DNA of 63,396 nt, the filler included, from Olpidium bornovanus S191 (lineage: Eukaryota > Fungi > Olpidiomycota), in assembly GCA_017911155.1 (NCBI GenBank). It is 30 parts of 30 records of this genome, joined end to end, with 100 filler letters (N's around TTAATTAATTAA, not from the genome) between each part and the next. Parts side by side here need not be neighbours in the genome. Positions count along the whole stretch, not along the records: positions 55,548 to 57,670 come from JAEFCI010007362.1; 29 more parts are not named here. One strand, 5' to 3'. The notes below the pieces were generated by a model, which was not told the DNA's origin, searched no databases, and saw only the letters and a list, made by a program, of their open reading frames with translations. Positions 1 through 58,159 of this stretch are shown here, one piece after another. Made by a program: the position numbers and the translations under genes. The number at the start of each line of letters is the position of its first letter. Positions within the stretch are counted from its first letter, which is position 1.

Positions 1-1189
1 CCGCCGCAACGCCAACCATTATGCCTATTTCTTTTTTTTTTTCGGGACGGTCGTTCGAAAAAATAATTCCCCGAAAACTCACAAACTGCTGCTCGGTGCT
101 CGGCCGCCGCGCTGTGCATGACCTGCCGATCGAGATCCGGCGGCGGCAAATTCAAGAGCACCAGGGCGGAGTCGCTCGAATGGTGCCGGATCTCCGCCTT
201 GAGGGCGGCTATCATTTTCGCGTGCTCGAAACTCGCTCGCGTCCGAGCGGCAGGCGTCGCTTTCCGTCGCCGCGGAGTTGGCCCCTCGCGTGCTGCGCAC
301 GTGAATGTGCATGTGCACATTAATGCAAAGAATTTGCACGGGCACGCAAACGCACAGAAAAAGAAAAATCCCGGCAAATGCGCGTAATCACGAATAACCC
401 GCGCGACGTCGCGGAAGTATTCCCAGTTTTCGGCCTACCTTCTGGCATGCTCGGCATGGCGAACTTGACGCGGCCCGATCCGCCGGGCTTCTGAAAATCG
501 CCGCTGGAATTCCCTGCGATTTGACCTTTCCCAAATTGCCCGGGCATCTCTCCCGGGAACGACGCGCCGCCCGCAGCAGCATTTGCGGGGGACGCCCGGC
601 GCTTCCGAAAAGTACGGTTAGCCTGGCGTCTATAATATACTTCTTCGCCGTCTTGTGTTCGCCCCAAAACGCTCCCGCTACCTGTTCAATTGGGCTGCCG
701 TCCGTCGGGAAAGCTCCCTCATTCGCCGACGGTGCGCGCTTGCGTGTCTGGAACAATGGCGACCTCAGGCTCGCGTCGGACGGCGAGGGAAACGCCGGCC
801 GCGGCTTGCTCTGCGTCACTTCGTAGGAAAACTCCCGGGAGAGCGCGTATTCCGGATCGGGGATTTCCGATGACGGCACTTCGCCGTCTCCGGGGGCCAA
901 AGACGCCTGCGCGAACCAGATCAGCAAAACCCGCCGCCGCCCGTTGCGCGCCTAAAAGAACGTTGGCTGACACTTGCCGGAGTGTACAACGGAAGTTGTA
1001 CGACGGTCACCAGAGTCACCTATCGGGGGGCGTATGAAACGTTACGACCCCGCGTGGAGTGGCGCAAACCAATCCACCTTCCGGCATTTTTTCCTTGCAC
1101 AAACGTACTCGTAGGCGAAGAAGCTCCAGGTGGTGTACTAAGGACCTTCTGATAGACTCGGGATCTTCGGACATCCGCGCCACCATGAA

Positions 1190-55547: not shown

Positions 55548-57574
55548 CATGCGCATCACCTCTTCTGGCACGCCGTCCGGCAGAACCTTTGCGTGCCTGC
55601 TGCGCTTTAGGGCGGAAGGATACTCCGGAATTTCGTTCTCCTTTCCTCCCAGGCCTCTGATAGGCGACGGACGCCGAACGGTGAAGGGTGAAGCCTCATT
55701 TAAACTGATCGCTGTAAGCGTGCGCATCGCCTCCTCTGGCGCGCCGTCCGGCAAAACTTTGGCGCACCGCTCGCGCTTTCGGGTGGGGGGACACTCCGAA
55801 ATTTCCTTGATCCGGCCTTGAGACCTCGTGCGTCGGCAGAAGGGTTCTGACCGGGCGGCCTCGGGGCAGCGGGGAATGGCGGTCGTGGCGTCGGCCGACT
55901 CCGTTAGATCAATCACTGGAAAGCAAAAATACGGCGAGGATACGGTCCAGAAAAAAACAGGGATGAAAAGCAATATCAACAGAAAAGTAAATAATAAACG
56001 GAACGAGCTTCAAGCTCAATTTGCTCTTCTCCCCGTCGCCGAAACGGCCTACGCAGATTCCAACTCACCCTGCCTCGGTTGGACGCGGCTCTCGTTTCCG
56101 TAGTCGTCGAGAGATATCCAACGGAGCGCGGGTCCGCAAGCTTGTCCGGATTCCACCGGATGAAACCGCCGGAGGCTTGGGCCACCCCTCACGTATTTGC
56201 TGTACTCGCAAAGCGCGTGTTCGAGATCGATTCCACGAAGGCGCGGCACATCGGAAGGCAAGCGAGCGTTGACGAGTCGTAGAAGACAGGGTAAATCACC
56301 GTCCATTTTGTATCCGCATGCCCGGAGGCCGGCCTTCCCTCCGGGGCCGAGAATCGCCCATTCCCAGTCTTGCAAGTAAGCAACGCCATGCAAAAGCCCG
56401 TCGGCGGCGATCTGAAACGCCAAAAAGTTACCCAATCCTAAGAAAATTGTATGCAGCCAACGAGAGGGAGGTCGCGCATTAGCGAATTCACTGATGTTGA
56501 TCACGCAGACTCAGAGCGCAAAGGGAAATTTGAGTTTGAACGCAGGGAATTCCGAAACCCGGTCAATTACCAGGAATCGGGCAGTTTGCTGCCATCAGGA
56601 TTTTATATATCCTTTTGACAGACGGCTTTCGTGTACCATCTGCCGTAATCTTAGCCCAGATCTCTTCACCGTGCTCGAAGGCTGCCCGCCATTGAGCTTT
56701 CCTAAGGATAATGGACGTACAGCTGGTAAACGCCCCCTGCTCAAACGAACGCAAATGTCAGCGGGCAGTCCTCAATTTCTCGTTGACGAGACAGCACAGA
56801 AATTCGCGGGTATGGAGTAGTCTTGGACGATACGGGAAGTCGCGTTACTCACGGTTGCGATGGGGAGGCCATCTCGTTTTCGGCGGTCAAGGACTCGTAG
56901 CGCGCGCGAGCAGTGCTTTACAAACCCAAGCTCGTCATTGAACTCAGGCCGCGACACCAGGCGATGCACGACCATATTCGCGAAGAACGTCGGATCAGAC
57001 TGGTGTCCGTGCAAGATGTCGCGGATCAGAACGGACGTCCGGTCTGCTTCGCGGAAAATCTGCCAGACGAGCGTGACAGCGCGTCAGCGACAGCCAAAAG
57101 GTTCGGCAACGGCATGATCGAACCGCCGTTAGTTACGACGGACGCGTTCGCGCGAAGTTTGAGGGGCCAGGGGGTGGGGGGACGTGGGGTGCCAACTAAA
57201 ACCGCCCTGACTCCCAAGCCACGGGTTACGAAGGCGCAGAGACAAGCGGGGAGTCGCGAGGAGCCGCTCACGTTGGTGAACCGTCTGGTGCTCAAGAGGG
57301 GGTCGTCCGTCCAGGGGAACGGCCGGCCAGCCGCGCGCCGGTTGTGGATGCGGTGCCGCTCGACGATGAAGTATAGCAAGCGGCGCGGCACTTCGCCGGC
57401 GCAGCCAGAGCGGCGGGTCACGGCGCAGGACGGCACAACAGCCCCTGCGCGCGGCCCGCCGCCGGCGGTATGCGTCCGCTTGGTGCCGCCAATGCCGCTC
57501 GCTGCTGTCCGGCGCGCGGGCCGCGAGGCTCCAACTGTTGCAGAAGCCGGAGTATGGCGGGAACGCAGCTTCAT
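55548..57574 (-). CDS. 5-hmdU DNA kinase helical domain / alpha-glutamyl/putrescinyl-thymine pyrophosphorylase clade 1 protein, 5 exons, 3' partial
   Basis: Exons 57574-57272, 57059-56853, 56736-56571, 56437-56069 and 55915-<55548, all GT-AG with consistent phases. They encode YFIVERHRIHNRRAAGRPFPWTDDPLLSTRRFTN-IFREADRTS...PIAT-GAF...IP-GLGNFLAFQIAAD...LGPGGKAGL...DLEHALCEYSKYVR. Confidence 0.88.
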
Positions 57575-58159
57575 CCTGAGATCCTGCACGGCGCTTGCGC
57601 TTACAGGGCGCCAGCTACGGAAACTGAGCGTGCCCAGTAAAAAAACGAGAATCGAGAATTGGAAAACATGNNNNNNNNNNNNNNNNNNNNNNNNNNNNNN
57701 NNNNNNNNNNNNNNTTAATTAATTAANNNNNNNNNNNNNNNNNNNNNNNNNNNNNNNNNNNNNNNNNNNNCCAGGCCGTCGTCGCGAGCGCCGCCCAACG
57801 GCGGGCCCGGGCTGGACGGTCGAAGAGGACAAAATCCTCCGGCCCGGGCCGCCCCCCAACGAGACTGTGGAGGCCAGAGCCCAATGGACTCCTTTCCCCC
57901 TGGGCTGCCTGGAGACATTAAGTACTTAATGCATCGACCGCCCGGCGGCCCAAGGGGGAGGAAGACGGCAGGTGCGCGACAAGACTTTCCGCAGCCAGAA
58001 AGTACGGGGGGTGTGCTGTGGCACGGCCCGAGAACCGTCCGCCGACCAACGCCACGGAAGGCGGGCGGCGGGCGAAGAACAGCGGGCGAAGGGCGGAGGC
58101 GGCAGCGGTGTCGAGGGCAGGACGGGCCCCCGAACCCGGGGGTCAACCAATAGAATAGT

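Follow-up and report, generated by a model that had tools for sequence, protein, structure and literature searches.

Does the fungus Olpidium bornovanus S191 carry a working nuclear gene for a protein of a family, PF18723, that is overwhelmingly viral in composition, and what might such a protein do? These questions are raised by a piece of DNA (JAEFCI010007362.1) at positions 55548–57670 of the 63,396-nucleotide stretch analyzed here (the window), which is made of 30 joined parts of the genome. The piece contains a real, spliced and transcribed nuclear gene whose product has a PF18723 domain. The reading that we favor, to which we give a probability of roughly 60%, is that this expressed nuclear gene codes for a stand-alone PF18723 domain captured from a phage in ancient times, and that the protein is a base-flipping enzyme or reader of a C5-modified pyrimidine.

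Gene structure, transcription and family membership

The gene was read within this piece alone and lies on the minus strand, where reverse-strand reading and scripted joining link five exons, across four GT..AG introns, into a single frame starting from the ATG at 57574. The joined frame counts 471 codons, none of them a stop, and remains open where the piece ends at 55548. The coding part of exon 1 (57272..57574) specifies residues 1–101, in which a 64-amino-acid stretch rich in Ala, Arg and Gly precedes the start of the PF18723 domain with its ERHRI, PWTDD and RFTN motifs. Intron 1 (57060..57271; 212 nt, phase 0) separates it from exon 2 (56853..57059; residues 102–170), which holds FREAD and HRLVSR, and intron 2 (56737..56852; 116 nt, phase 0) is followed by exon 3 (56571..56736; residues 171–225 and the first base of codon 226). 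Intron 3 (56438..56570; 133 nt, phase 1) lies within a Gly codon, and leads into exon 4 (56069..56437), which encodes the hairpin-like GLGNFLAFQIAAD, LGPGG, and EHALCEYSKY. The PF18723 domain ends in exon 4 at about residue 320 (coordinate 56154), and the C-terminal extension that begins in this exon continues, beyond intron 4 (55916..56068; 153 nt, phase 1), as the Arg/Pro/Glu-rich exon 5 (55548..55915). No Pfam family reaches its cut-off in exon 5 or the C-terminal extension, and no domain is recognizable there.

Transcript contigs from two RNA runs of two independent studies (X1, 2022, and X2, 2025) each align to the piece as five blocks, and both skip exactly the intervals 57060–57271, 56737–56852, 56438–56570, and 55916–56068, with CT..AC ends on the plus strand. 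The contigs extend 472 and 942 nt past 55548, and the 3' end of the gene is therefore outside the piece. Contigs of both studies differ from the piece at the same three bases, one (55802) changing Ile to Val in the exon 5 tail, and two (56196, in a Lys codon, and 56985, in a Phe codon) being synonymous and inside the conserved domain; the assembly and the RNA probably come from different strains. Two raw-read RNA runs from 2026 gave no reads on the piece, about 6% of each run having been read, and so they provide no test. The preliminary description of this DNA, made from the sequence alone, had proposed four GT-AG introns with matching phases, two of them interrupting conserved motifs, and one intact protein once they are removed. 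All four junctions are exact in the transcripts from both studies, introns 1, 2 and 3 fall between RFTN and IFRE, between T and GAF, and between IP and GLG, and each of the motifs that it quoted is present in the spliced protein. The protein is indeed intact through 471 codons, but its frame runs open across the edge of the piece, and "one intact protein" is correct only in that sense.

The assignment to PF18723 (aGPT-Pplase clade 1, now "HMUDK_hel") in that description also holds, and at the level of sequence comparison membership is secure, as judged by exon-level Pfam matches, collinear homology, and conserved residues. Exon 1 matches the profile with 41.3 bits (profile positions 6–42) and exon 4 with 41.2 bits (positions 176–273), both above the gathering cut-off of 25 bits. 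Exons 2 and 3 have no Pfam match alone, yet they are collinear with full-length homologues, and the four exon pieces tile the homologue alignment in order so as to cover the whole domain. The spliced protein matches P0001, a protein encoded on a phage contig, with 43% identity over 259 amino acids (residues 66–321; blastp, 1.8e-61), and proteins of Ambispora, Basidiobolus and Geosiphon at 1e-55 to 1e-60. In a family alignment of 86 rows there are 23 near-invariant positions, defined as those conserved in at least 90% (R, PWT.D, F.N, RE.D, R, A, G.F, D, GPG...G, and LCE..K), and the spliced protein keeps the consensus residue at all 23.

The exon 4 piece has 12 matches in a representative protein library, none of them near-identical, the product of this gene being apparently absent from it, and exon 4 alone has a single weak match among phages (tblastn), the relationship being clear with full-length homologues. 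In a profile search with the fungal-clade alignment most matches were proteins of M6-like phages and no additional eukaryotic member came up, no close relatives of P0001 were found in IMG/VR, and a metagenome scan gave only relatives with 29–38% identity, which are probably viral. A sequence search of the PDB with the family profile returned nothing relevant. The phage members of clade 1 (M6 gp55, PhiW-14 gp72, and the C-terminal half of SP10 gp186; PHROG 2396) share with the fungal protein the family, the length of the conserved domain, and the 23 near-invariant residues. The fungal gene differs from these in being nuclear, with four introns and with low-complexity N- and C-terminal tails; its product is 30–44% identical to any phage member, and the fungal piece shows no kinase, deoxyuridine monophosphate (dUMP) hydroxymethylase or transferase gene beside it.

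Fold, putative chemistry and the separate kinase domain

An AlphaFold2 model was made for P0001, the closest homologue, using an 84-row alignment that included the exons of this gene, and has a mean predicted local distance difference test score (pLDDT) of 93.9. Its top match among solved structures is PaMx11 gp46/PUGT (Foldseek probability 1.00, template modeling (TM) score 0.56), with which VIA-align pairs 215 of 259 residues at a Z of 12.1; the next VIA-align matches are HhH-GPD glycosylases and a queuine-salvage enzyme, at Z 7–9. PUGT is a 5-phosphomethyl-deoxyuridine glycinyltransferase, a clade 2 amino-acid:DNA transferase. The match of the predicted model to PUGT covers the whole domain, exceeds the other matches, and is to a relative that is biologically expected.

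Clade 2 enzymes use base flipping, and attack of a Cys on C6 has been proposed (PMC8989533, PMC11472151). Mutation of this Cys or of a nearby Glu abolishes the activity of M6 gp51 and ViI gp247 (PMC8989533), and residues E243 and C247 of PUGT contact DNA (PMC11472151). The motif that reads VETVLCKWK in M6 gp51 compares with LEHALCEYxKY in clade 1 and with E298-HAL-C302-E-YS-K306 in the fungal protein, for which the codons of E298-H-A-L-C302-E303-Y-S-K306 are at 56196..56222 on the minus strand, the Cys codon being 56210–56208. Alignment with hhalign to eight clade 2 sequences sets LEHALCE over VETVLCK, with a G-x-G-x-aromatic hairpin in register, but the match is weak (P 0.019, probability 2%); hhalign against one lone clade 2 sequence is uninformative. 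When VIA-align is applied to the apo structure 8z2m, residues 5..244 of the model pair with 5..256 of the chain, and the 12-residue offset at the C-terminus agrees with the motif register given by hhalign. Clade 2 (PF18724; PaMx11 gp46/PUGT, PDB 8Z2M and 8Z2N, and M6 gp51) thus appears, from the predicted model, to be the best structural match of the family, and both the hairpin and the E-x3-C motif line up between the two clades. It differs in that sequence identity is about 10%, with marginal profile similarity, and that no exon piece matches PF18724, whereas the M6 gp51 control does so at 1.4e-46.

On the basis of the clade 2-like fold and the motif register, we propose that the protein would bind DNA and flip out a C5-modified pyrimidine, either 5-hydroxymethyluracil (5hmU) or a derivative of it. 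Cys302 would then attack C6, Glu298 would also take part, and the chemistry would take place at C5. A variant of the same proposal is that the protein specifically recognizes the C5-modified base, as its reader or as a helper.

Several considerations weigh against the favored reading. The structure is predicted for a phage homologue with 43% identity and not for the fungal protein, VIA-align warns that helical folds may reach a Z of about 12 by arrangement alone, and the sequence-profile link between clades 1 and 2 is the weak one described above. PF18723 proteins are without demonstrated function, PHROG 2396 being labeled "unknown function" and M6 gp55 being dispensable (PMC8989533). The visible protein is partial, with the 3' end of its gene lying outside the piece. 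In the trees described below, the fungi form one group in the best tree, with support of only 77/46, and a word-limited search with 14 candidates, which is not decisive, found no fungal homologues of the kinase adjoining P0001.

It is possible, if in our judgment unlikely, that the protein is instead a non-catalytic or repair-type factor, either a DNA-binding reader or a glycosylase for oxidized or modified pyrimidines such as damage-derived 5hmU, with no dedicated pathway. The predicted fold is related to that of HhH-GPD glycosylases (Ogg, AGOG, EndoIII, MutY, AlkA/Mag), which have a similar helical two-lobe architecture and a hairpin DNA-binding motif, although there is no relationship at the sequence level. 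In other eukaryotic proteins of the family the domain is joined to PHD or Chromo, both chromatin readers, none of the fungal orthologues has a visible partner enzyme beside it, and M6 gp55 is not needed for catalysis in vitro (PMC8989533). However, the family-invariant polar residues, including those of Glu-x3-Cys, are all kept in four fungal lineages, and this exceeds what simple binding should require. That every invariant residue is conserved in several early fungal lineages with no visible kinase partner suggests an activity that belongs to the domain itself.

A bolder extension of the favored reading, which we regard as doubtful, is that early-diverging fungi (this organism, Glomeromycotina and Basidiobolus) have kept, since before they split, a phage-derived Cys-dependent DNA-pyrimidine-modifying enzyme. 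It would make or remove, in nuclear DNA, a mark so far undescribed, a thymine or uracil substituted at C5, and would do so independently of the Chromo and PHD versions in basidiomycetes and algae. Even in the phage pathways of thymine hypermodification, which are well studied, clade 1 lacks an assigned activity, and the fungal proteins could serve as a clean system for finding it. A modified pyrimidine dependent on this gene would extend the set of DNA marks in eukaryotes; failing that, the gene is still a well-supported case of ancient capture from a phage by a fungus.

The protein could also be itself a 5-hydroxymethyldeoxyuridine (5-hmdU) DNA kinase, phosphorylating 5hmU in fungal DNA and so starting hypermodification, as would follow from the preliminary description, which gives phosphorylation of 5hmU in DNA as the established role of the family. 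The Pfam title, "5-hmdU DNA kinase, helical domain", is in keeping with such a role, as is the association of PF18723 with kinases in phages, but domain assignments in the reference phages do not bear this out. In phage M6, the PF18723 protein is gp55, and it is the adjoining gp54 that is a P-loop kinase (PF18748). SP10 gp186 fuses both, with PF18748 at residues 35–193 and PF18723 at residues 313–598. The first two steps are reported to need no more than the M6 kinase gp54 and the clade 2 enzyme gp51, gp55 being dispensable in vitro (PMC8989533), and in the genome note for the M6-like phage SN1 the gene for aGPT-Pplase1 is likewise distinct from that for the nucleotide kinase. The 5-hmdU DNA kinase activity belongs to the P-loop domain PF18748, and not to PF18723, for which the name "HMUDK_hel" records the place where the domain was seen rather than an activity; correcting this naming trap is one use of the present analysis.

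The kinase proper (PF18748, HMUDK_HMUD1; M6 gp54, ViI gp67/gp243, and the N-terminal half of SP10 gp186) acts in the same phage pathway and is often adjoining or fused to PF18723, but it is of another fold and family. Within the visible part of the fungal protein, no exon piece matches PF18748 or any P-loop family at E≤1, whereas the positive controls M6 gp54 and SP10 gp186 do match PF18748, and the four fungal orthologues have PF18723 only. The fold, as modeled for P0001, is also glycosylase- or transferase-like and not that of a kinase. We therefore consider it very improbable that the fungal protein is a 5-hmdU kinase.

Phage relatives and origin of the fungal genes

Two trees were built, a quick one with 83 rows and a careful one with 46 rows. 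Both contain a seven-member clade on a long stem, composed of this gene, those of Geosiphon and Basidiobolus, two from Ambispora, and P0001 and P0014, with support of 100 by the Shimodaira–Hasegawa-like approximate likelihood ratio test (SH-aLRT) in the former and 100/100 in the latter. In the careful tree, P0001 and P0014 form a pair (98/90) that is sister to the fungal genes. Of single sequences P0001 is the closest; its gene, on a contig of 99 kb, has primase/DnaB on one side and a family-A polymerase on the other, with RecA, RuvC, Vsr, thymidylate-synthase-like and dUTPase-like genes near it and a deoxynucleoside monophosphate (dNMP)-kinase-like P-loop gene adjoining. P0014 lies in a similar compact cassette with phage replication genes around it, and from these neighborhoods both P0001 and P0014 are identified as phage genes.

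In the P0001 region (L003, 4937–11310), the P0001 gene is directly upstream of the dNMP-kinase-like gene (PF21448, PHROG 139), and a dUTPase_2-like gene is nearby. No PF18748 or PF18724 genes are present within 10 kb on either side of P0001, and in this phage lineage clade 1 may be employed in the absence of the canonical DNA kinase and transferase.

The exon chains of three annotated fungal orthologues were reconstructed exactly, and a phase 0 intron between FTN and (I/V)FRE, the site and phase of intron 1, is common to Basidiobolus (71 nt), Geosiphon (67 nt) and Ambispora (76 nt). The presence of this intron in four fungal lineages argues for one old nuclear acquisition. The neighbors of the fungal orthologues are ordinary nuclear genes, including those for midasin, Med31, a gamma-tubulin complex protein, and P450s. 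These observations point to a single ancient acquisition followed by vertical descent, and we infer that the transfer was from phage to fungus. The simplest course of events would be one capture, from a phage or a prophage-bearing bacterium, before the fungal lineages split; an intron would then have been acquired and the gene inherited vertically, three more introns arising in the lineage of this gene.

Homologues in basidiomycetes, to which the preliminary description drew attention, do exist, but they form a different, Chromo-fused clade. The Chromo-fused proteins (mostly of Basidiomycota) and the PHD-fused proteins (of marine protists) have the same domain on a separate branch, and the visible part of the fungal protein, unlike these, has no chromatin-reader domain. 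A single clade of the Chromo/PHD-fused and early-fungal genes is rejected by the approximately unbiased (AU) test (p 3e-7), for a group that was defined after the tree had been seen. Fusions within the family include those to PHD in P0005, P0110 and P0112 and to Chromo in P0127, all eukaryote-type proteins, and, in a metagenomic protein (P0035), one to a GNAT acetyltransferase; one ESM Atlas cluster has 139 Chromo-fused members, mostly from Basidiomycota. Eukaryotic members of the family were already public, the Basidiobolus orthologue under an automatic UniProt name and the basidiomycete and algal versions in the ESM Atlas and AlphaFold DB. What is new is modest: an early-fungal clade with a common intron is tied to a specific phage lineage, and the putative catalytic residues are all kept with no visible kinase.

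It is barely credible that the gene, instead of being an old resident, arrived recently by horizontal transfer or is carried by a mobile element. The viral composition of the family and the phage origin of the closest single sequence would accord with such an arrival, and the piece is too small to show gene neighbors. Against it are the four spliceosomal introns, one of which recurs at the same site and phase in three other fungal lineages, the location of the orthologues among housekeeping genes, and the lack of transposase or repeat ends within the piece. Contamination with phage or bacterial DNA, or a dead pseudogene, for which only the viral affinity of the family speaks, is refuted by the spliced transcript contigs of two studies and is at odds with the intact 471-codon frame and the 23 of 23 near-invariant residues, so that with the trees and the common intron the earlier view of a genuine expressed nuclear gene of phage-type ancestry is upheld.

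Minor features of the piece

The 5' leader (57575..57670, minus strand) is transcribed, the transcript contigs reaching 57665 and 57670. It contains an upstream open reading frame of 22 codons (MFSNSRFSFFYWARSVSVAGAL, then a stop) on the same strand, from the ATG at 57669 to the TAA at 57603–57601 and out of frame with the ATG at 57574, which might be a translational control element or a product of chance.

Within exon 5 there are two copies of an 88-nt unit, at 55550–55637 and 55721–55808, which are 171 nt (57 codons) apart and 78% identical, and which encode ...KR.R.AKVLPDG.PEE.MR... in the C-terminal extension. The repeat came from a separate repeat search, Tandem Repeats Finder having reported no array in the piece; the copy at 55550–55637 touches the piece edge, and the array may therefore continue beyond it.

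A 269-amino-acid open frame on the plus strand (56913–57722) is antisense to exons 1 and 2 and runs into the artificial linker that follows the piece; it is most likely an artefact of composition, because the region is 60–73% G+C. Several soil-metagenome DNA runs hold 5–23% of the sampled words of the piece, indicating that the organism or a very close relative occurs in soil samples.

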